A DNA stretch of 64,000 nt from the NCBI GenBank assembly GCA_025594325.1, contig JANHCV010000004.1:2046001-2110000 (forward strand). The letters run 5' to 3'. Shown here in pieces: positions 1,123-59,329 of this stretch; position 1 is the first letter of the stretch, and each line of letters starts with the position of its first letter. This DNA is from Blastocladiella emersonii ATCC 22665 (lineage: Eukaryota > Fungi > Blastocladiomycota). The notes beneath the pieces are model-generated. The model worked only from the letters and a program-made list of their open reading frames with translations, had not been told where the DNA came from and did no database searches. Position numbers and translations under genes: made by a program.

Positions 1123-2963
1123 TTACTTTGGGAGCAGGTCGACCATCAGCCGAAAGTATCGTTTGCCATCCACAAGCGGCGGCGGAACCGACTTGTCAAT
1201 GATCAAGTCCAGCCCCTGAAGCAAATCTGGAGAGCCCTTACTGATGAGCATCCTTTCCCAAGGCGTGCCGTCCGACATGGAAGCCCAAGTATGCATCGAA
1301 TCGACGATAGAGCAAACCGCCTCGCTGTGACCAAGTGGGCGCACTTCGTAGCTGTACAATCTGGAGAGAAAGCAAGCGCACTCGCGAGGATCGATGTAAG
1401 GGCTCGGTTCGTTGCGATTGATACGGTTGCTACACGATCTTGTCGCGTTAGCGGAACTCGTTCACGTGGGATTCAAGTATTCCATGGAAACGTACTGGGT
1501 CAGTGCAAGGACAACGTTACCATCCATGTCCTTTGCCTCCTCAGGCGAGAGGATGAACTTCCACCAGGATCCAGCAACAAAATGAGGGCCACTCGTGTAC
1601 GTGCGGGTCATGAAAGGGTCGTCCGTGACGTCAAACTGGATGTGGACTCGAAAAAATGGAGGATTGTTTGCGCGGATGACGCTTTGAAGCGCAGCAAACG
1701 GGTTCGATTTGCAAAGCTCATCGCCGCCTGCGTCGTTTGCGTCGTCCATCGAATCACAGTCAGAATTGCGCGCTTCAGGCAGACACCATCCAGCTGGAAG
1801 CATTGCATCGTCAAACTCCAAGCGCGTGATAGCGTGTTGGAGCGCGGACTTGTCGTAAGCAGCCGATTGATGATGACGCCAAGAATCGGGTCCCTGGCCG
1901 CGAGCGGCGATCGAAGGGTACGGCGCAGATCGTCCTCGGGCATGGCGTGAAAATGCACAAGCTGTGCAATTGGCTTGGAGCCCACGTTGAGCTCGCAAAG
2001 GAACTCGTACAGCGCAACTTCTGAGGGCGAGAAGAAATCGCCTTCCAGGACGCGAAAAAGAAGATTCTTGGGGCACCGCTGCAAGATCGCTTTGGTGACG
2101 GGATGCGGCCCCAAGTACTTGAGGTGGGCAATGGTCGCATCAAGAAGCGAGGCAACGGACTGCGGGACCATCCTGTCGACGCAGAAGGACATTACCCTCG
2201 GGGCGAGCTCGGTGAAGGTTGACAAAGGAGAGTTGGCGGTCGCAGCGGAGTTGGCGAGCGAGTTCGAGTAGAATCTGCAGCACGAGTCGACGACTAAATC
2301 AAGCCCTACGTATTTCCGCGGGACTCGCATTAGGTCAGAAATTGGACACGCCCGCCCGAGCAGGAACTCCGTACCAAAGTAAGTCCCGGCCTCGAGGTGG
2401 TCGAAAAAGTTATCAACCGTGATGCGCGATGCAACAAGAGCTTGGCATCCGCCGTAAATGGCAACAAGGGCCGATTCCCACACAAATAGCATGCGCAGTG
2501 TCACTTCAGCCGGCGCTTCGAGGCTATCCAAGTCGCTGAAGCCGGCTGAAGGCAGTGCGAAGTCGACGCGAAGCGCACAGCCCTCGGTTGGAGCGTGCCA
2601 AACGTCGTCAAGAAGCGCAGCGAAGAGAGGGCTCTGCATCAGGAAGTTGCGATGCAAAGCATACGTCTGACCCTGCAAGCTGATGTTGATGTCTGACTGA
2701 GCGCTGCTTCCGGCGAGCGCCCGGGAGAGGCGGACGATTGGAAGGACGGTCGGCGTGCACTTGCAGGCGGTCGCGAGCGTCTCTTGCCAGGACTTTGGTA
2801 TGGTCGATGCATCAGGTTGCTCCATGTTAGACTGCGTCAGCTGCATGAAAGCGTCCAAAGGGCGAGAGGCAACGCGGAGCTCGCCGCGATCAAGCCGACT
2901 CGGCTCGTCCCACGTGATGTAGACATCACGTTGAGGCGCATTGCCAGTACCTCCACCACTCAC
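1123..2963 (-). CDS. BTB/POZ-BACK-MATH-like protein (Cullin3-adaptor type); frame break near 1850-1877; 5' end not resolved
   Basis: BTB core SDINISLQGQTYALHRNFLMQSPLFAALL. Removing an in-frame 69-nt intron (2306..2374, GTACGG...TAG) gives AGTYFGLDLVVDSCCRFY. BACK-like segment LLFRVLEGDFFSPSEVALYEF. MATH-like segment SGPHFVAGSWWKFILSP...GNVVLAL lies in a second frame (ORF 1462..2076). A 57-nt intron (1439..1495, CTAAC branch) joins this to the last exon ending MVDLLPK* at 1123. Confidence 0.7.
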
Positions 2964-5037
2964 TCCGTTCGGGTGTCAACTGTGCGGGGCTTTGCCCAAG
3001 TGCCCTCTCGCTGCAATCACCAGGCGCGACTGAAGCGTCCGCAACGCGTGATTCAAGTAACTGCACAAATGAAGTGGAACACACAGAACTCGCTTCAGGT
3101 GTAGTAGCGCTGGCTGAGACCGTGCTTCGGATCCGCGTTACATGGAGGGACACGAGAGAATGGGTCGCGACGCGTCAGTACCGCGCGTTGGAGCTGTCCC
3201 GACACGCCTACCTCTCGCTTTTGCTCGCCTTCCTGCTCATGGGCTAGATCAAGTTGGTTACGGATGGAGCGGCGCAAGCTGGAGGCTGTTGATGCCGACA
3301 GAAGGAGGCGGGAGACAAGTAGTCAGGGATGTCTATTCCTGCCTTCGGCCTCGAACCCAAGACGGGTAGAGGGGAGAATGGATAACAAAGCAGGGCGCGC
3401 CGCAGCGGGGTGCGGCGGCGCGGGAGCGAGGGATTGCGGGCGGCTCACGCGAGATCAGATGATTGATCACCGCGGTCGTGGCCACATGAACGACACGCAA
3501 CAGAGGCTTCCGGGCGGATCGCCTTTCCATCCTGTGCAGCGACTCCTTGTGCAGCGAACTGCGCTCACGCGCGCAGAATCGCGGCCAGTCACGCTTTGGT
3601 GATGGTCCTCTTGATGGAGCCCTAGCGCGCCTTGGTTGTGCGCGCCGAGTACCTTGTAAAGCGCTTCACTGCAGCATACGCGCACGTAGCGCGTAGCTCG
3701 CTCAAGGCAACTGAGATCAGATTTATGACGGACGCGTCAAGGTGAGCCGCTCGCTCTCAACAGAATGCTGGTATTCTCGGCAAGCCGATATGGAAGTAGT
3801 TGGCAATCGTGAGCGAAGGGCATGAATAGACTAAGCACAACGAATGCGCGCGGCGACTCGATCTCGACCAACGCGTTGGTTTTCCGCCAAGAAAGCACCT
3901 GACGACGATGGCGTTCGCGTCGCACGCTATGATCCAGATTGAGGCCTTGAGCGAGCTCGATTCCTTGTGCACGGAACAAGAGAGCTCGGATGAAGCGGAC
4001 CTAAGGTGGAAGGATTGCGAAAGGTTGAAGTGCGTTACGGTGCCCACGACATGTCGCTGACAGCGACACGAGACACTCCCGACCGCGCCCGCGACGACCT
4101 CCCTGCTCAGCCGCCTTACGCTCGCCTCCAGTTGCGCGGTGGTCGACGTGTACAAATTTTGCGTGGGAAGCCTGTCAACGATGTTGAAAGTAATGATGGT
4201 TCGCGGCGCGCATAGAATAGAGCTCGTCCGAGCTCGACAAGGGTTCTAGTGATTTGATTGTACGACGTTCCGCCGCCGTGCAGGTGGCAGCGGTCGGGGT
4301 CAGAAGCGATCAGCAGCACAGCAGATGAGTCGCACGTGCTTGCGCCGGAGCAAATCCAGATGCGCTCTCCGCTCATGAGTTTGCATCCCGCACCACCGAA
4401 GCAGAGACACCGCGTAGCTAGTCGTTGAGAGGGTTAACGTGACTTTGTCGTGCCGATTCGCGCAGCACAACGTCCCGCGACAAGTAAGCGAGATGCGACG
4501 CGACGCTTGGCGGGCACAACGACAGTGTAGTGGCGGCGGCGGCAACGCAAGAAATGCGAGTACATGGACGCAAGCGGACGAATAAGAACACAAATAGCAT
4601 CAACTTCGAGCTGGGGTCGCTTTGCGACGCCAGATATTGCAAGCTCAGGCGACGCGAAAACGTCTCGCGACATGCCTCTCTGCTCGCGAGCTCGCCTAAG
4701 CAGCGCTCGTGCAGTCGCAAGAGCAGAGTGCGAAAGCCATTCTAACGGAACACTCAAGTCACCGGTCGAGTCGAGCACAGCACGTCGCCGCGCGAGCGCC
4801 ACTCAAAGCGCTGCAGGAGAGACGGGACCAGCCTGCCGTCGATTTCATGATTTATGAGATTCATTGCATGGAGTAAATCAGCTTCATTGATTGAGGGGAG
4901 CATACGGGAGGGGAGCGGAGCGGAAGCGAGAGCCGAAGCGAAGTGGCGCAACACGACACGGGGAGTGATGTCATTGGGAGCAGTGATCAGCGTTAGCCAG
5001 AAAATCGCGGTCACTATAGCTTGGGCAAAGCCCCGCA
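2933..5037 (-). repeat. Copy A of a diverged ~2-kb duplicated module (relic gene or TE; second copy at 59330..61327)
   Basis: Colinear shared blocks, e.g. CCTCCACCACTCAxTCCGTTCGGGTGTCAACTGTGCGGGGCTTTGCCCAAGTGCCCTCTCG, GCAGCATACGCGCACGTAGCGCGTAG, CTCAAGGCAACTGAGATCAGATTT and GAAATCGCGGTCACTATAGCTTGGGCAAAGCCCCGCA. Many indels; no long intact ORF in either copy. Confidence 0.85.
3287..3502 (-). mobile_element. Solo LTR (216 bp) of the chromovirus at 52223..57602
   Basis: TGTTG...CAACA termini. 5-bp TSD GAGGC at 3282-3286 and 3503-3507. Two substitutions versus the LTR at 52223 (counted by eye). Confidence 0.97.
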
Positions 5038-51331: not shown

Positions 51332-52021
51332 TCATTCGGAACTAGAACCAGCTCCGCCGAGCATGTCAATAACTTACGTAAATCTCATCCATGTTGCGGA
51401 TTCCGAGCTGAAGTGGATCGTTAGCGCCTAAATCGTGGATCGGTGCAAGATGTTGAGATTAGACGGACCTGCTTCAGCGACTTGTCGCTATCGTCAGGAA
51501 TACATTTCGCTTCCTTTGTAATGAATCTGATCTTCGTCATGGGGTTGTAGAACGATACATTGAGATGCTCGCACACAACTGTGGCAAGCTTACGGAACGC
51601 TGTGTCTTCCTTGGTCGTCACTCCTGAGTGCGTAAAGCAAGTGAGCGTGACAGACCAACAGCCTAAAGAAAATAGCTTGCTACGCACGAAACTTGAGCCC
51701 AGTGGCCATTCGAAACTTCACGGTCACGTCGCCGTTGCGGGGTCGTGAGCTGGCCTCCTCGGCCTCGAGCTCCGCCCACAGCGGGTCGTCTTTCACCGAC
51801 TTGACAAGATGGCGCAACACGGCCGTGTCTTGATCATTTTCCAAGATTGGCTTGATTGAGGAGAGAAGATCCCCTTGTTTGCGAAGGACAGCTGCTTGAT
51901 GACTCAAGGCGCCGCGGAGAATGTCGTTGTCGCGCTGGCATAGACGAACAGCTTGTGATAGTTCCGCGCATGTCTCTTCGAGACGGGCGATGCGTTCATC
52001 TGTTTGCATAGAGTCCGTCAT
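51332..52021 (-). pseudogene. Coiled-coil + SUMO/Ubl-like protein, copy 1; a 1-nt insertion truncates it just before LGG
   Basis: Exons 51688..52021, 51469..51623 and 51407 downward give ...VTVKFRMATGLKFRVTTKEDTAFRKLA...KIRFIT...SLKQLGIRNMDEIYVSY*. Skipping one T at 51368 reads DMLGG-AGSSSE*. Confidence 0.7.
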
Positions 52022-52111
52022 GACTTGGAAGTTGATGGCGAGCCCCAAGGAGAGGAGCAAGTAGAGCAGAGCTGGTGGTCGGGCGGTGCGTTTCCAAACG
52101 GGATCGCTGTG

Positions 52112-52147
52112 GCATCACGTGGCAGCTCACATGATTGTTCGGCGCGT
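52112..52147. promoter_or_regulatory. Copy of the POL12 upstream module, ahead of SUMO-like copy 1
   Basis: GCATCACGTGGCAGCTCACATGATTGTTCGGCGCGT versus GCATCACGTGGCGGACCACATGATTGTTCGACGCGT. Confidence 0.6.
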
Positions 52148-52222
52148 TTTTCACTCGTCCCGGTGAGGACCCAAACGCTTGGACAGGCTCCGATTTAAAC
52201 GCACGCAGAGCGGGGAACCGTA

Positions 52223-52438
52223 TGTTGATGCCGACAGAAGGAGGCGGGAGACAAGTAGTCAGGGATGTCTATTCCTGCCTTCGGCCCCGAACCCAAGACG
52301 GGGAGAGGGGAGAATGGATAACAAAGCAGGGCGCGCCGCAGCGGGGTGCGGCGGCGCGGGAGCGAGGGATTGCGGGCGGCTCACGCGAGATCAGATGATT
52401 GATCACCGCGGTCGTGGCCACATGAACGACACGCAACA
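52223..52438 (-). repeat. 3' LTR
   Basis: TGTTG...CAACA; preceded on the minus strand by the purine tract GGGGGGAGGTGA. Confidence 0.97.
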
Positions 52439-53844
52439 TCACCTCCCCCCAGACCGTGACCTGAGCGACTTGACGAACCCTTGGTGCACCGCGTTCTTGA
52501 GCTGGCGACCGGACCGGCTGCGCGTGATGGACGACAGCGGGTCGGGCGAGGGTGAGCGCGCGCGCTTTGGGTTGGCGCGGGCGGGCGATGAGGCGGCCGA
52601 GGACTGCGTGACCGAGAACTGCGACTTGTCGGCCGAGACTTGGCGAGGAGCAGGATCTTGGCGTGGAGCGGGCACAGGGGAAGACGTGGCGACCTTGGGG
52701 GCGAGACGCTGCAGCGAACGCTGGCGCTCGAGCCAGGTGTTGGCCGAGATCTTCTTGTGGTAGTCGTTGATGGCGCCGGCGGTGTCGAAGCTTCTGGCGG
52801 GGATCCACGAGTTCTTGGCGGAGCGATCGGGCCAGCGGACCAGGTACTCGCGCTCGCCGTTCGCGCTGGCGATGACGGAGGATGTTGCGCACGGTGTCCA
52901 ATTCGCCCAAAGGCGCCGACTCGGGCTGGATGAGGCGCAGGTGGTGCGCGGGGTAGATGGACTCGGTCATGAGCTTGAGGTGAGCGAGCTGCTCCTGCTT
53001 GGTCATGTCGCAGAGGGGCGGCTGCGCGCGGTAGTCACAGAGCGCGTTGGCGGGACGCGCGAACATGAGCGAGAAGGGCGTCGAGCCGTGGCGCGCGTGC
53101 GCGCGCGTGTTGTAGGCGTACTGGATGGCCGGGACCATGGCGGGCCAGCGGTTGAGCTGCCCGTTGAGCAAGGGGAGCAGCATCTCCTTGACTGAGCAAA
53201 CAAGACGCTCCGAGGCGCCGTTGGCCTGCGGGTGGTATGGCGACACAAGGCGGCAGTCAATGCCGGCCATGTCGGCGAGCGAGGCGATGATCTGGTTGGC
53301 GAACTCGGGGCCGTTGTCGGACTGGATGATGCGCGGGAAACCGAACTGGAAGCACGTGGCCAGGAAGCAGGTGGCGACCTCGCCGGCAGACGCAGAGCGG
53401 ATTGGGTGTAGCCACGCGAACCAGGTGCAGATGTTGATGATCACGAGCACGTGCGTGTATCCGTCAGGCGAGATGGGCAGCTGCATGCAGTCCATGGACA
53501 GGTGGTCAAGCGGCAGCAGCGCCTCAATCGAGCGCATCGGGTGGAAACCCTGCTGCGTGGCTGAGAACCGCGCGCACGGGATGCAACCGGCAATGACGCG
53601 CTGGCAGTCGGCGAGCATGCCAGGCCATTCGTGGCCGAGGACGACGAGCTTCTGCTGTGTGGCCGCGGGACCCGAGTGGCCCCAGTTGTGCACGTCGCAG
53701 ATGATTTGGTCGCGCTGGTCACGCGGAACGGGCGCCGTGTTGAGGCGCTGCGCGGGCGGGACAGTGCCGATGGGCGAGAACTCGGGCCGCGGCGCGCTAC
53801 CCTCGGGGGCGGGTGTGGCGGCGACAACGCAGGCGTGCACAGCG

Positions 53845-54224
53845 GGCGCGGGTGTTGAAGAAGAGCTGCCCCCATGGGTGGGTGTGGCAGCGAAAGCGCG
53901 GGCCCGCTCTGCGGGCGGGAGCGAGGCCGGCGCGAGGAAGAAGTGTCAAGCACGATTCTCCGCAAGGGAGAGATCGTGCGTCATGAGCTGCTCGAGCTCG
54001 CCATCGCCAAGGGCACACTCGGGGAGAGACGGCGCGGGTATTGAAGAAGAGCTGCCCCCATGGGTGGGTGCGGCAGCAAAAGCGCGGGCCCGCTCCACGG
54101 GCAGGAGCGAGGCCGGCGCGAGGAAAAAGTGTTGAGCACAATTCTCCGCGAGGGAGAGATCGTGCGCCATGAGCTGCTCGAGCTCGCTGTCGCCGAGGGC
54201 ACACTTGGGGAGAGACGGCGCGGG
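53845..54224 (-). repeat. In-frame 186-bp tandem duplication between RNase H and integrase
   Basis: GGCGCGGG anchor at 53845, 54031 and 54217; 62-aa unit PSLP(K/E)CALGD(S/G)ELEQLM(A/T)HDLSLAEN. Confidence 0.9.
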
Positions 54225-55242
54225 AGAGGATCCGGAGGGACCCCCCCCCACCAGCAGGCGCCCACGGGGGGAACGCGATACAGGACAATGGCCGGCGCGG
54301 TTGATGGCGACGAGATGGGCACGGGCGTCGGTATTATACAGGCGCGACAGGATGTCGGGCAGCACGTTCAGGACGCCGGGGAGGTGTGTGACCAAGAATG
54401 AGAGGGAGAGCAGCGTGTCAAGCCAGTTTTTGAGGATGGGCGACAGGCGCTTCTGCGTGAACATGTGGGTGAGCGCTGCGTGGTCCGTGAACAACGCGAA
54501 ACGGCGGCCGTGGAGGTAGTAGAAGAAGCGAGTGAGCGCAAAGACGATGCCGAGGAGCTCGCGCTTGGTGGCCAAGTAGTTCTGCTCAGCGGGCTGCAGA
54601 GAGCGAGAGGCAAACGAGATGTAGCGCGGGGACTCGCGGCTACCCTGGAACAGGACGGCGCCAAGACTGACGTTTGAGGCGTTGGTAGCGACGAAGAACG
54701 GCTTGGAGAAATCAGGCGGCGCGAGACATGGGGCAGCGGCGGCGGCGACGGCGGCCTTTAAGGCGAGGAACGCCTGCTTGCACTCGTTGGTCCACACGTT
54801 GCGGACGTCGAGGTCAATGCGCTTGAGGTTGCGCAGCGCGTCAAGCGGGTGCATGAGGACCGCGGCGAGCGGGATGTAGGCGCGCAGGTAGTTGACAAGG
54901 CTGAGGAACTTCTGGACCTGGTTGCCGGACCTTGGACGCGGCCAGTCGCGGATCGAGACGACCTTGGCCTCGGCGGGCTGCACGCCCTTGGCCGAGACGA
55001 CGTGGCCGAGCAGGTGCACGCGTGCGCAGTAGAAGAAGCACTTGGCGGGGTTGAGGCGGGGGTTCCACCGCGTGAGACGGTAGACGATGAGGACGAGGTG
55101 CTGCGTGTGCTCCTCGACCAAGGCCGAGAAGATGACGAGATCGTTGATGAAGACGCGCACAAACGGCATGTTGTGGAAGATGTTGGACATGACGGCCCAG
55201 AACTGCGCCGAGAGGGTCTTGATGCCAAACGGGCCGCGTGAC

Positions 55243-55551
55243 GACGACATTGGGCTGGATAGAGCCGGAATGATGTTGTCAAGGAACAGGTCTGCACGCA
55301 CGGTCAGGAACGCCGGGTAGCACCAAGAAGGCTCGCCGCGAACGGGCGTGCGGTTCGCCGCAGCCGAACGAGCGCGCGAAGATGACATCGGGCTGGATAG
55401 AGCCGGAATGATGTTGTCGAGGAACAGGTCTGCACGCACGGTCAGGAACGCCGGGTAGCACCAAGAAGGCTCGCCGCGAACAGGCGTGCGGTTCGCTGCA
55501 GCCAAACGAGCGCGCGAAGACGACATTGGGCTGGATAGAGCCAGAATGATG
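55243..55551 (-). repeat. In-frame 138-bp tandem repeat (~2.25 copies) at the RT deletion junction
   Basis: GA(C/T)GACAT(T/C)GGGCTGGATAGAGCC at 55243, 55381 and 55519. Confidence 0.9.
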
Positions 55552-55969
55552 AGGTCAGAGATATTATTATTGTGAGCGACAAGCGCCACGTACAGGTTGC
55601 AGATGGACGCGCGTGCCCAGGTCACGAAAATGCGGGCATGCCAGCCAGTCGGGGTTGACCGCACCGGCGCCGTTGTGCTCACGGCGCGCACCAGAGCGGG
55701 CGGGGGCGGCGAAATGCGCGACGGGACCGAGGCGGCCGTGAAGGGGATTGTTGTGGGTGACAGTGGCGGCGCGGGCCGAGGTGGGGCCGAGGCGGGAGCC
55801 GACAATGATGTGGTAGAACTTGTTGAGCAGGTGCGCGAACAGGCTGGTGGCGGACGCCGGCAGGAGGGCGAGGACACGGAGGTGGTGGGCGAGCAGGGGC
55901 TGGGAGCGGGGAATGCCGTCGACCACGCGGGCAGGCAAGGAGACGAACTCGGAGCGGGAGCGCTCAAGG

Positions 55970-57364
55970 TCATCCGCCAAACTTGGTCTCGAGACCCGCG
56001 GGCCAGACGGGCGCCACAGCCGCGTGGTAGTTGCGCGGGGCGCGCTTGCGCACAGCGGAGCGGGAGCGCGAGCGCTGACGCTTGTCGCTGCTGCCACGGT
56101 CACGATTGTGGCGGTCGTCGGGCACGGCGAGAAGCGCGCGCGGGGCGTCGCGGGACGCGCGGTCGTCACGGCCGGCCTTGCCCTTGTTGTAGTGGCCGTT
56201 CTTGTCGTGGGCACCGCCGCCGCGGTGGTTGTTGTAGTTGTTGTTGTTCTTGTTGTTGTAGTTGTTGTAGTTGTTGTTGTAGTTGTTGTAGTTGTTGTTG
56301 TTGTTGTTGTAGTTGTTGTTGTTCTTGTTCTTGTCCTTGTCCTTGTCGCCTGACTTGGTGCGTGCGGCTGGCACGGCGGACGAGGCGTCGCCAGCGTCGC
56401 CGGCGGGCGCCTTGCTGCGCGAGGCGATCTGGACGTAGCCGTGGGGGCCGATGAGGTCAACAAGTGTGAGCGGGGTGCGCTTGGAGGTGGCGGTGCCGAG
56501 CGTGTGGCAGAGGGCGTTGTAGACGTTGTCCTTGATGCCCTTGACCAAGTTGAGGAACGAGGAGAGGAGCGCGGGAGGCAGGTGGCTGGTGGGATCCAGG
56601 CAACCCCCCTTGCGGAGACGCCGGACAAACACAACGCAGTGGCGCTTGAGGGTGAGGCCCAGAGTGGCGGGGAACGAGAGGTCGAGGTAGCGGATGATGG
56701 CGGCGCAGTCCATGTGGTCGAAGAAGTGGGCAATCAGCTGGTGCTCCTCGAGACCAGCGCCCTCGCGGACCATCGACTTGTACACGACCTGGGCGTCGTG
56801 GCTGACGGTGGTGGTGGCGGCGTTGAGCAGCTTGTACAGGTTGTGCAGCGGGTAGAGGACGCGGAGGTTGCGAAGGAAGGTGGCTGGGTCTTGGCAGTTG
56901 CCGCGGGTTGGGTGGCAGTAGTTGATGCGGGTGCTCTCGATGTTGGCGCGCAGCTGCTTGTCGACGCTGGTGGTCAACGCGGCGGGAGCGGCTGGCAAGG
57001 CGGCGGCTGGCGCGGCCGGGGGCGCCTCAGCGGGCAGCATGTCAACGGCGAGGTTGATGATGTTGTTGTAGCGCGAGTGCGCGGCGATGAGCGCGTCCAG
57101 CGCCTTGGCGGCCTGGGCCTGCAGCTTGGGCGGGTGGGTGGCCGACGTGTTGTTGCCCTGGGACAGCGCGGGTTGCGCGGCGGCGTCGATGGCGGCCGAG
57201 CAGGCAGCGAATTGCTCACCAAGTAGCTGGCGCAGCTCGGCGGCGCGCGCGCGTGCGGCGGGCACGGCCTGGGGGTCCTTGGCCGCGGTGCTGCAGGTGC
57301 CGGGGAGCGCGGAGATGTCGCTGCAGAGCGCCAGCGAGATGGTGAAGGTGGGGTTCGAGGCCAT
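55970..57364 (-). CDS. gag: Gag-like ORF with an Asn/Tyr-rich tract
   Basis: First ORF inside the 5' LTR, ATG 57364 (MASNPTF), open to 55970. No CCHC knuckle seen. Confidence 0.7.
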   Translation of the reverse strand: MASNPTFTISLALCSDISALPGTCSTAAKDPQAVPAARARAAELRQLLGEQFAACSAAIDAAAQPALSQGNNTSATHPPKLQAQAAKALDALIAAHSRYNNIINLAVDMLPAEAPPAAPAAALPAAPAALTTSVDKQLRANIESTRINYCHPTRGNCQDPATFLRNLRVLYPLHNLYKLLNAATTTVSHDAQVVYKSMVREGAGLEEHQLIAHFFDHMDCAAIIRYLDLSFPATLGLTLKRHCVVFVRRLRKGGCLDPTSHLPPALLSSFLNLVKGIKDNVYNALCHTLGTATSKRTPLTLVDLIGPHGYVQIASRSKAPAGDAGDASSAVPAARTKSGDKDKDKNKNNNNYNNNNNNYNNYNNNYNNYNNKNNNNYNNHRGGGAHDKNGHYNKGKAGRDDRASRDAPRALLAVPDDRHNRDRGSSDKRQRSRSRSAVRKRAPRNYHAAVAPVWPAGLETKFGG

Positions 57365-57386
57365 GCGGAAAACTACTTGAAGAAAA

Positions 57387-57602
57387 TGTTGATGCCGACA
57401 GAAGGAGGCGGGAGACAAGTAGTCAGGGATGTCTATTCCTGCCTTCGGCCCCGAACCCAAGACGGGGAGAGGGGAGAATGGATAACAAAGCAGGGCGCGC
57501 CGCAGCGGGGTGCGGCGGCGCGGGAACGAGGGATTGCGGGCGGCTCACGCGAGATCAGATGATTGATCACCGCGGTCGTGGCCACATGAACGACACGCAA
57601 CA
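57387..57602 (-). repeat. 5' LTR
   Basis: 215/216 identical to the 3' LTR (GGGAACGAG versus GGGAGCGAG). Confidence 0.97.
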
Positions 57603-57777
57603 CCGTATGCTGACCGAGGCAACGGCAGGAATTGGAGTTGTGAATACGACGTATATAGGAGGAACAAATACGGTGGGTATGGGCGTCAACAAACATGGTG
57701 AAGCCACATGAGCCAGCGCATGGACAACCATCAGCTTTAGATGGGCGTCGCGCGAGATGCGATGCTTTGCGACAGAG

Positions 57778-58414
57778 TTAACCTGCAGCCATGAAGTAGT
57801 TGACGGAGATCTTGTCCATGTCGTTGATCCCAAGCTAAACCAGAGTGTTAGTGAGTGAAATGAGAGAGAAAGCTGGCGGGAAAGCGTACCTCGTTCAGGG
57901 TCTTAAACGACTTGGCACTGATACGCTCGCCGTCCTCGGTGATGAAGCGAAGCGCGGAGTTGGGGTTGTAGTGGGGAATGGCGTTACGTTCATGTAAAAC
58001 ACCAGCAAGCTTTCGGAATGGCGTGCTGGGTTTGGCCTTGATCTCTAGATAGACAACGACGCATGAGCGAATGGCCGACTGAAAGCAGAGGGCATACGCA
58101 CTAAGGTCCCGTCCAGCTGGACCCTCAAACACCACAGTGATCGAGGGCTCGCGATGCTGGCCCGCCTCTTCCACCCACTTGGGGTCCTTTTTGATTGCAT
58201 CCACCAGATGGCGCAGGACGGCCATATCGGGCTGGAGCTCGAGGAGCGGCTTCAGTGAGGAGAGAAGCTCTCCTTGCTGGCGAAGCGCATCCGACTGTGC
58301 GCGCACAATTGAACGGAGCCTTTCGAATTGCTTTCCGTCAACGATGTTTGGACCATCCTCGCACATCTCCTCGTGACGCTTGATACGTTCATCAAGTTGC
58401 ATGGAGTCTGACAT
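57778..58414 (-). CDS. Coiled-coil + SUMO/Ubl-like protein, copy 2 (intact, 174 aa; exons 58102..58414, 57890..58044, 57778..57834)
   Basis: ITVVFEGPAGRDLKIKAKPSTPFRKLA...ALRFITEDGERISAKSFKTLNELGINDMDKISVNYFMAAG*. SUMO-type pattern (I.K.T.F.KL, RF..DG.RI, TL.ELG..D.D.I.V). Introns of 57 and 55 nt, the latter with a CTAAC branch. Confidence 0.75.
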
Positions 58415-58693
58415 GATTTTTGATAAGTTTGACGAACTTGTACGGGAGCTTCAAGCGAGGCGGGTGTCGTGGCTGGACTGCGCCCGTCGCCTGTTTCGCG
58501 TGCGACGTTGTGCAATTACCTGATTTTTAGGCGCGTTTTCGCTCCTCCGCTTCACAGTGCATCCACAATTCCTCTCATGGTTTCTTCAACAAACGAGCAA
58601 TTCACACGAAATCCCCGCCTTCTCAATGTCGGGGTCCCAACATGTACAACACAGAGTGTTATTGAAGCCCGCGCTTCAACCCGCTGCAAGGAT

Positions 58694-59124
58694 TTACACC
58701 AGAGCTGCACCAGCGAGCTGCTCGAGAGCTAGCACAATCGTGTCCATGTCGCAAATATCAAGCTAGATGCGGGAAGCAAGCAGAAGGTGAGCGGCGCGGC
58801 GCGGACTTGGGTCGGTAGCAAGAACAGAATCTGCGCACCTCCTTAAGCGTCTTTTCAGTCGTTTCGTTGAGGTTCATACCATTGTCATGAACAAATCGGT
58901 AGGTTTCGGGCTTCACGCCGCGCTTCGCATTCACAGCGATGGCGAGCTTGCAAACTTGGTTTTGCCCTTGGCCTTGATTTCTGCACGTGCAAGCAAATCC
59001 CAGCGTGAGACGCCTCGGAAACGCGGGATTAGCACACGGATGACGCACCCAAGCGGTCATGGCCGTTGGGACCCTCAAACGCCACAGTAATCACGTCGTT
59101 GTCGCCGATAGTGCCAGACGTCAT
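58694..59124 (-). pseudogene. SUMO/Ubl-like protein, copy 3, with a 1-nt deletion in exon 2 (exons 59049..59124, 58839..58980, 58694..58762)
   Basis: MTSGTIGDNDVITVAFEGPNGHDRLEIKAKGKTKF/(fs)KLAIAVNAKRGVKPETYRFVHDNGMNLNETTEKTLKELDICDMDTIVLALEQLAG-AALV*. Same two intron positions and phases as copies 1 and 2. Confidence 0.7.
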
Positions 59125-59329
59125 ATTTGCTGCATGCACGCCACTTAATGGTCAGCGTCCGACATATTGCAGCAAGTTATACTTTGTAAAATGCGTTACA
59201 TGGTTGGTGGGGTGCGGTGGAGCGAGAGAGAAAGGACCCGGAGAGGCCATTCCGAGCCTGTTTCAAGTGACAGACGAAAAAGCTCGCGTCATGCGCATCA
59301 CGCGCAGCATCAATTTCTTCCCCACGTCC

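Follow-up and report, generated by a model that had tools for sequence, protein, structure and literature searches.

A lineage-specific family of SUMO-derived genes in the fungus Blastocladiella emersonii, most of them headed by an orphan helical domain

The minus strand of positions 51332-59124 of the window, by which we mean the whole 64,000-nucleotide stretch of the Blastocladiella emersonii ATCC 22665 genome analysed here, carries three SUMO-like genes of three exons each, which we call copies 1-3. They are three of the sixteen members of a SUMO-derived gene family, eleven of which place a conserved helical head in front of the SUMO-like domain. The reading that we favour, at roughly an even chance, is that the long, head-bearing proteins serve as non-covalent SUMO mimics, adaptors or decoys of the SUMO pathway, a mechanism that we infer from the architecture of the family and from the way in which its C-termini have changed.

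Results

The layout of the trio follows the first-pass annotation, which had described three neighbouring minus-strand genes whose two introns agree in position and phase, and an exon 2 of 155 nt in copies 1 and 2; the exon models and their measured lengths bear out both statements. The introns are 55-76 nt long, with GT..AG ends, donors of the GTGCGT or GTACGC type and branch-point-like CTAAC or CTCAC motifs. Intron 1 is always in phase 1 and falls within the beta-1/beta-2 hairpin, intron 2 is always in phase 0, and both positions are homologous in all three copies. Ahead of strand beta-1, copies 1 and 2 carry a head of ~90 amino acids, which is absent from copy 3.

Copy 2 is the sole clean open model of the three (58414-57778, minus strand as for all exons below; 174 amino acids). 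Its exon 1 (58414-58102; 104 codons plus 1 nt) encodes the helical head and beta-1, exon 2 (58044-57890; 155 nt) the SUMO-like core, and exon 3 (57834-57778) strand beta-5, ending in ..FMAAG with a TAA immediately after. Copy 1 is built in the same way: exon 1 (52021-51688; 111 codons plus 1 nt) supplies the head, beta-1 and a phase-1 donor GTGCGT, and exon 2 (51623-51469; 155 nt) the SUMO-like core with beta-2, the helix and beta-3/4. Read in frame, its exon 3 (51407-51366) stays open through the last strand for 13 codons, to ..IYVSY, and then meets a TGA (51368-51366) four codons ahead of the Gly-Gly position. The former tail, DMLGG-AGSSSE-stop (51332-51367), still has its Gly-Gly at exon-3 positions 17-18, as canonical SUMO does, but a single additional T at 51369/51368 makes it readable in the +1 frame only.

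Copy 3 is a headless member of the short class. Exon 1 (59124-59049) comprises 25 codons plus 1 nt; exon 2 (58980-58839), at 142 nt, is one nucleotide shorter than the 143 nt found in each of the other short paralogs, S1-S4, and owing to this 1-nt deletion at ~58950-58951 the exon-1 frame breaks at ~58950 and runs into an early stop at 58933-58931. On this evidence copy 3 reads as a dead short-class copy, a pseudogene. Its exon 3 (58762-58694) ends in ..EQLAG-AALV-stop, with a four-residue tail starting with Ala as in S1-S4, and this end can be reached only via a frame jump. The published B. emersonii ATCC 22665 assembly of 21 contigs was made from HiFi reads with Illumina polishing (PMC9730499), and the indels of copies 1 and 3 both lie outside long homopolymers. 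An acceptor 8 nt downstream was tried as a rescue of copy 3 and set aside: it keeps the frame open, but unrelated residues then replace strand beta-2.

The SUMO ancestry of the domain was traced with profiles. Copies 1-3 were searched exon by exon, joined translations were used only for reading-frame checks, and a public full-length paralog, P0001, stood in as proxy for the whole domain. A profile of the aligned exon-2 peptides from all 16 genomic paralogs had 152 matches among solved chains, and the best 60 of the 152 are all SUMO1/2/3, Smt3 or SUMO fusion constructs, with E values of 1.7e-10 for di-SUMO2 and ~3e-4 for single domains; the same profile matches exon 2 of the genome's canonical SUMO (hhalign, 98%, E 2.9e-13). 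Against a leave-out profile, built from canonical SUMO and the 13 members that lie beyond the window, hhalign gave 97.7% (E 1.4e-12) for exon 2 of copy 2, 95.5% (E 1.6e-8) for that of copy 1 and 98.2% (E 5e-14) for that of copy 3 read in its downstream frame, a likeness to the family that we judge to be far beyond chance. For copies 1 and 2, the link to SUMO is visible to profiles only. Single-sequence searches with their exons 2 found no match among solved structures or to canonical SUMO, and exon 2 of copy 2 alone, in a single-exon scan, reached 14.4 bits (E 0.035) against Pfam Rad60-SLD (PF11976), below the cut-off. Ubiquitin was considered as the closest relative and rejected, the best 60 of the 152 chains being SUMO and the genome's ubiquitin genes being distinct loci.

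The proxy adds the full-length view. P0001, which is S4 (H9P43_008767), is a 'hypothetical protein' of 95 amino acids from B. emersonii ATCC 22665 and is identical to our independently built intron model of S4, which therefore validates the splice rules used for the family. It covers 70/72 positions of Pfam Rad60-SLD (E 1e-4; 22.4 bits against a cut-off of 23.8) and aligns end to end with SUMO2, GG on GG. Its predicted fold is beta-beta-alpha-beta-beta..beta (predicted local distance difference test, pLDDT, 79; predicted template modelling score, pTM, 0.63), and the top structural matches of the model are SUMO2, SUMO1 and Smt3, with template modelling (TM) scores up to 0.87 and root-mean-square deviations of 1.6-2 A. 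In the ESM Atlas, Rad60-SLD clusters were among the named matches of P0001, which we take as a lead only. The SUMO-type beta-grasp domain proposed at first pass was borne out by the exon-2 profile, by the alignment with canonical SUMO and by the fold and structural matches of P0001. Copies 1-3 are assigned this domain through the homology of their single exons to a family with a full-length member that folds as SUMO.

The genome's canonical SUMO gene (C4 ~603.2-603.7 kb; L029:1340-1780) likewise has three exons, ends in ..VGG-C and shows a G+C content at third codon positions (GC3) of 0.98. It lies on the same contig, C4, as 12 of the 16 derived copies. Because the three-exon structure and the intron positions and phases are shared with this gene, we conclude from sequence comparison that the family arose by its duplication. 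A paralog with both introns readable in frame was sought and none was found: every intron 2 shifts the frame or contains a stop.

Whole-genome profile searches returned exactly 11 heads and 16 SUMO-like exon-2 units besides the canonical gene. Twelve members are on C4, at ~850 kb, 887-891 kb, 1052 kb, 1060 kb, 1147-1149 kb and 1154 kb, and four are on the contig of the window, C16; the family first described as three genes in fact consists of four neighbours on C16 and the twelve members on C4. The fourth neighbour, L23 (C16 ~2,111,960-2,112,600; L023:3962-4603), lies 2-2.6 kb past the window end and is an intact long-class gene ending in ..IPNQ, without glycine. Every gene of the family has one SUMO-like domain. 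The short class, SUMO-like only, consists of copy 3 and of S1-S4 on C4; the long class, in which a three-helix head precedes the SUMO-like domain, consists of copies 1 and 2 and nine others.

Within the family, exon 2 is 16-66% identical between members. A four-residue insertion in the loop between the helix and beta-3 is found in copies 1 and 2 and in no other member, which makes these two copies sisters. Copy 3 is placed in the short class because of its sequence (exon 2 is 41-57% identical to S1-S4, with 57% to S2) and a shared bipartite promoter motif; its exon 1 is 52% identical to that of S2 and 56% identical to the N-terminus of S4 (P0001). A single gain of the head is not claimed here, since 10 of the 14 inner branches stay open in the exon-2 tree, built on 47 columns. 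Frameshifts, lost acceptors or an insertion of a long terminal repeat (LTR) affect about half of the 16 members: in L17B a solo LTR sits in intron 1 and exon 3 is missing, and L20 and S3 have lost the acceptor of intron 2. L19 and L21A (C4, 1,052 and 1,147 kb) form a mosaic, with heads 82% identical (dS, the synonymous divergence, 0.26) versus 38% in exon 2, where dS is saturated; this suggests gene conversion or exon exchange between members. We infer a birth-and-death turnover of the family amid transposons.

Almost nothing of the family is in public protein sets. A word search with the open reading frame of copy 2 (exon 1, in-frame intron 1 and exon 2) had no match, a profile word search with a fragment alignment as query matched P0001 only, and ten head genes besides L19, copies 1 and 2 included, are missing from public protein sets.

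The head is the most distinctive part of the long proteins. Across the 11 aligned heads, including that of copy 1, which aligns with the heads of the 10 other paralogs, six columns are invariant and four nearly so, following a motif of the type EPL..LDPD.AVLRHLV.AVK.DP.W; from these invariant columns we judge the head to be under constraint. AlphaFold2 predicts helices 4-19, 27-60 and 62-75 for the exon-1 piece of copy 2 (mean pLDDT 71, pTM 0.36). Where the first-pass annotation had an N-terminal coiled coil of ~100 residues in copies 1 and 2 only, a helical head of ~90 residues stands, and the coiled coil is not proven. Searched against 1.84 billion protein representatives, the head profile had only two matches, none of them credible outside this genome: P0002 (E 7.6e-19), which is the genome's own L19 head exon, and a repeat protein (E 1e-4). 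Solved structures yielded coiled-coil noise only, and the ESM Atlas nothing usable. We call the head an orphan because the protein representatives, the solved structures and the Atlas yield no outside relative. The suggestion that the family is lineage-specific and fast-evolving agrees with this result and with the spread of exon-2 identities; as far as public data reach, the family appears confined to Blastocladiella emersonii.

P0002 is an NCBI model of 604 amino acids that joins the L19 head exon to a gene further downstream and passes over the SUMO-like exons (L019:5031-5210 and 1440-4126; C4 ~1,049-1,053 kb). It is either a mis-annotation or a real chimeric transcript. Were it real, the head itself might be the functional unit, a mobile 5' exon spliced to other downstream genes, with the SUMO-like exons as passengers; the join to a gene of ~540 amino acids and the mosaic history of L19 and L21A both point that way. 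P0002 may, however, be an annotation artefact, and all 11 heads precede SUMO-like exons, with the phase-1 junction conserved inside the beta-1/beta-2 hairpin, for which reasons we think a mobile head improbable.

The C-termini bear most directly on function. At the Gly-Gly position of canonical SUMO, S1-S4, L22, L17A and L21B have GG followed by a tail, and S1, S2 and S4 are intact, with GG and a four-residue tail beginning with Ala. Ala-Gly takes exon-3 positions 17-18 in copy 2, where a stop follows, and in copy 3, where AALV follows; a single Gly at position 17 precedes the stop in L1 (CG-stop), L21A (LG-stop) and L20; L19 and L23 have no Gly at the C-terminus. The ends that had been aligned across the trio thus hold for copy 2, with ..AAG-stop, but the GG tail of copy 1 is out of frame and the end of copy 3 lies beyond its frameshift. 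None of the three window genes has an in-frame Gly-Gly, nor does any intact head-bearing copy genome-wide.

How the motif was lost is telling. The open-frame long genes with good splice sites (copy 2, L1, L21A, L23 and copy 1) have each lost the di-glycine differently, and the long copies that keep GG (L22, L17A and L21B) are all frameshifted in exon 1, inside or just after the head. Together, these two observations argue that the head-SUMO fusion is tolerated only if it cannot be attached. A cleavable propeptide is not found in frame in the trio, copy 2 being tailless and the tails of copies 1 and 3 unreachable in frame. By the Gly-Gly measure, copies 1-3 would not be working modifiers, and the first-pass suggestion of a modifier with precursor-like tails is not supported for them, given the out-of-frame tail of copy 1, the mid-domain break of copy 3, and copy 2 being tailless with Ala at the penultimate Gly. 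The SUMO-decoy option offered alongside it fits better, there being no intact head-bearing copy with an in-frame Gly-Gly. A search for a nearby dedicated protease among the ~six C48 peptidase genes of the genome gave no match on C4 or C16.

True conjugatable modifiers would nevertheless be obtained if copy 2 were a ready-made mature form ending in Gly, copies 1 and 3 precursors, and their frameshifts assembly errors. Copies 2 and 3 retain the Gly at exon-3 position 18, as does copy 1 outside its reading frame; in length the tails are like SUMO propeptides; and the short paralogs S1, S2 and S4 have the textbook GG and four-residue tail. SUMO extended at its N-terminus is still conjugatable, and Atg8, Atg12 and Ufm1 use a single terminal Gly. 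Several points count the other way. Ala replaces the penultimate Gly in copies 2 and 3, while Ulp/SENP proteases grip Gly-Gly in a narrow tunnel and single-Gly ubiquitin-like modifiers rely on dedicated E1 enzymes outside the SUMO pathway. The assembly is HiFi-based and polished, neither indel is in a long homopolymer, copy 3 shows codon decay, and no intact long copy genome-wide has GG. We give such modifiers a slim chance. A more specific version has the head-bearing proteins whose single Gly immediately precedes the stop (copy 2 ..AAG, L1 ..CG, L21A ..LG) as protease-independent modifiers attached via that Gly. Each conjugate would then bring a self-associating head with it and, having a residue other than Gly at the penultimate position, would withstand removal by Ulp, and the result would be clustering and a SUMO tag that is hard to remove; this we hold to be very improbable.

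The DNA around the trio holds a young transposon and two upstream elements. A degenerate, chromovirus-like LTR retrotransposon (52223-57602, minus strand) separates copy 2 from copy 1, having inserted ~200 nt upstream of the start codon of the latter. Its LTRs (52222-52438 and 57386-57602) are 99.5% identical, with 1 mismatch in 217 nt, and are flanked by a 5-bp target-site duplication, CCGTA; before the insertion, copies 1 and 2 were only ~375 nt apart. Further copies of the same LTR, ~99% identical, occur at window positions 3287-3502 and as the solo LTR in intron 1 of L17B (C4; L017:6073-6288).

Upstream of copy 3 (59170-59201, minus strand) is the promoter-proximal bipartite motif ATGTAAC..ACTTGCTG, which is common to the four short paralogs on C4. 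With a spacing of 8-30 nt it has 14 genomic sites, versus 1 for the reversed control, lying 50-120 nt before an ATG. Of these, five precede short SUMO-like genes and nine precede unrelated ones; among the latter (prolyl oligopeptidase, MIF4G, BTB and unknowns) no theme was found, and the motif is probably a general core-promoter element. A different upstream element, GAAAACGCGCC..AATCA, is common to copies 1 and 2, ~110-135 nt before the ATG (window ~52128-52154 and ~58517-58540), the ACGCG core of which seems to resemble cell-cycle box motifs.

Discussion

We propose that the long proteins of this family, copies 1 and 2 among them, would not be attached to substrates. Instead, the SUMO-like domain would engage SUMO readers non-covalently, for example proteins with SUMO-interaction motifs, or Ubc9, while the conserved helical head would either associate with itself or bind a partner specific to the lineage. 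The proteins would in this way act as adaptors or decoys in the SUMO pathway, similar in their working to Rad60, Esc2 and NIP45 but of independent and recent origin.

What can be set against this proposal falls into two groups. The first concerns attachment and partners. The link between being intact and having no GG rests on ~ten genes (a Fisher count of ~0.03), a terminal single Gly of the kind used by some other ubiquitin-like modifiers may still permit attachment, and the binding to SUMO readers is a proposal only. The coiled-coil nature of the head comes from a monomer model of medium confidence, which makes the head helical and leaves the coiled coil unproven, and the expression and splice junctions of the trio are predicted. 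The second group concerns constraint. Between copies 1 and 2, dS is above 1, amino-acid identity 39-48% and dN/dS, the ratio of non-synonymous to synonymous divergence, ~0.3-0.4, a rough ratio because dS is saturated. Moreover, codon bias is weak in copies 1 and 2, with a GC3 of 0.62-0.66 versus 0.71-0.87 in neighbouring genes. The value runs from 0.98 in canonical SUMO through 0.85-0.89 in the intact short copies to 0.61-0.74 in the long ones, and the bias of the long class would fit low expression or relaxed constraint; the 0.64 of copy 3 would fit decay.

A rival view is that all three genes are functionless relics, with the frame of copy 2 simply not yet hit and the family a graveyard of SUMO duplicates in transposon-rich DNA. 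Copy 3 is broken and has fallen well below the GC3 of intact short copies, about half of the family is damaged, copies 1 and 2 show the weak codon bias just described, a young LTR element sits immediately upstream of copy 1, and no head gene is annotated as such. Copies 1 and 2, however, are long diverged and yet have kept frames of ~175 codons, all four splice sites and the branch points, which leads us to judge that they have been held open over a long time; head residues are invariant across 11 copies, and dN/dS is well below one. We therefore regard the relic view as unlikely, if less so than the modifier and mobile-head views, and return to the non-covalent reading as the one we favour.

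What does the family add? Beyond its canonical SUMO gene, the early-diverging fungus B. emersonii possesses sixteen genes derived from SUMO, of which eleven have an orphan head and almost none is annotated. Should the long forms prove to be non-covalent SUMO mimics, they would offer a natural experiment on the way in which cells make decoys or adaptors for a SUMO pathway of their own. In that case, the fact that different mutations have removed the attachment motif again and again would reveal selection against conjugation of the head-SUMO fusion. A modest practical gain concerns the public annotation of B. emersonii, an optogenetics model, which misses the family and appears to mis-join one head exon to a neighbour gene.

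Finally, we would like to set the family beside known SUMO-like systems. The nearest is canonical SUMO itself: like the genome's own gene, human SUMO1-3 and yeast Smt3, the trio has the beta-grasp, three exons, phase-1 and phase-0 introns and the Gly-Gly position. Unlike canonical SUMO, the window copies have no in-frame Gly-Gly, two of them carry the N-terminal head, exon-2 identity is only 20-43%, and GC3 is ~0.64 against 0.98. The direct relatives of copy 3 are S1-S4, which have the same exon sizes, the promoter motif and tails beginning with Ala; S1, S2 and S4 are intact, with GG and the higher GC3 given above, in contrast to the frameshifted copy 3 with its Ala-Gly.

In architecture, the long class resembles the Rad60/Esc2/NIP45 (RENi) proteins, which, like copies 1 and 2, have a GG-less SUMO-like domain at the C-terminus of a larger protein and whose SUMO-like domain acts by non-covalent binding to Ubc9 and SUMO-interaction motifs. 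The RENi proteins differ, however, in having two SUMO-like domains in tandem and an N-terminal region that is unrelated, whereas the present family has one domain and an orphan head. A candidate Rad60/Esc2-type gene is found elsewhere in the genome (L028, C17:1257057-1257269), with a C-terminal SUMO-like domain that has no Gly-Gly and scores 41.6 bits, over the Pfam cut-off. Because of the single domain, the unrelated N-terminus and this separate gene on C17, the family is not orthologous to Rad60/Esc2/NIP45; it looks to be a young offshoot of SUMO itself.

SUMO paralogs have also expanded in plants. Some of the eight Arabidopsis SUMO genes, for example, lie in tandem and are non-canonical; the plant genes have diverged rapidly, and some copies are poorly or not conjugatable. 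The B. emersonii family resembles them in tandem duplication and rapid divergence, in this case in an early-diverging fungus; to our knowledge, fungi usually have a single SUMO gene, and the same would be expected of early-diverging ones, and we know of no fusion to a helical head among the plant SUMO paralogs. What is new here, as read from the genome, is a lineage-specific family of SUMO paralogs with a new head-SUMO fusion.

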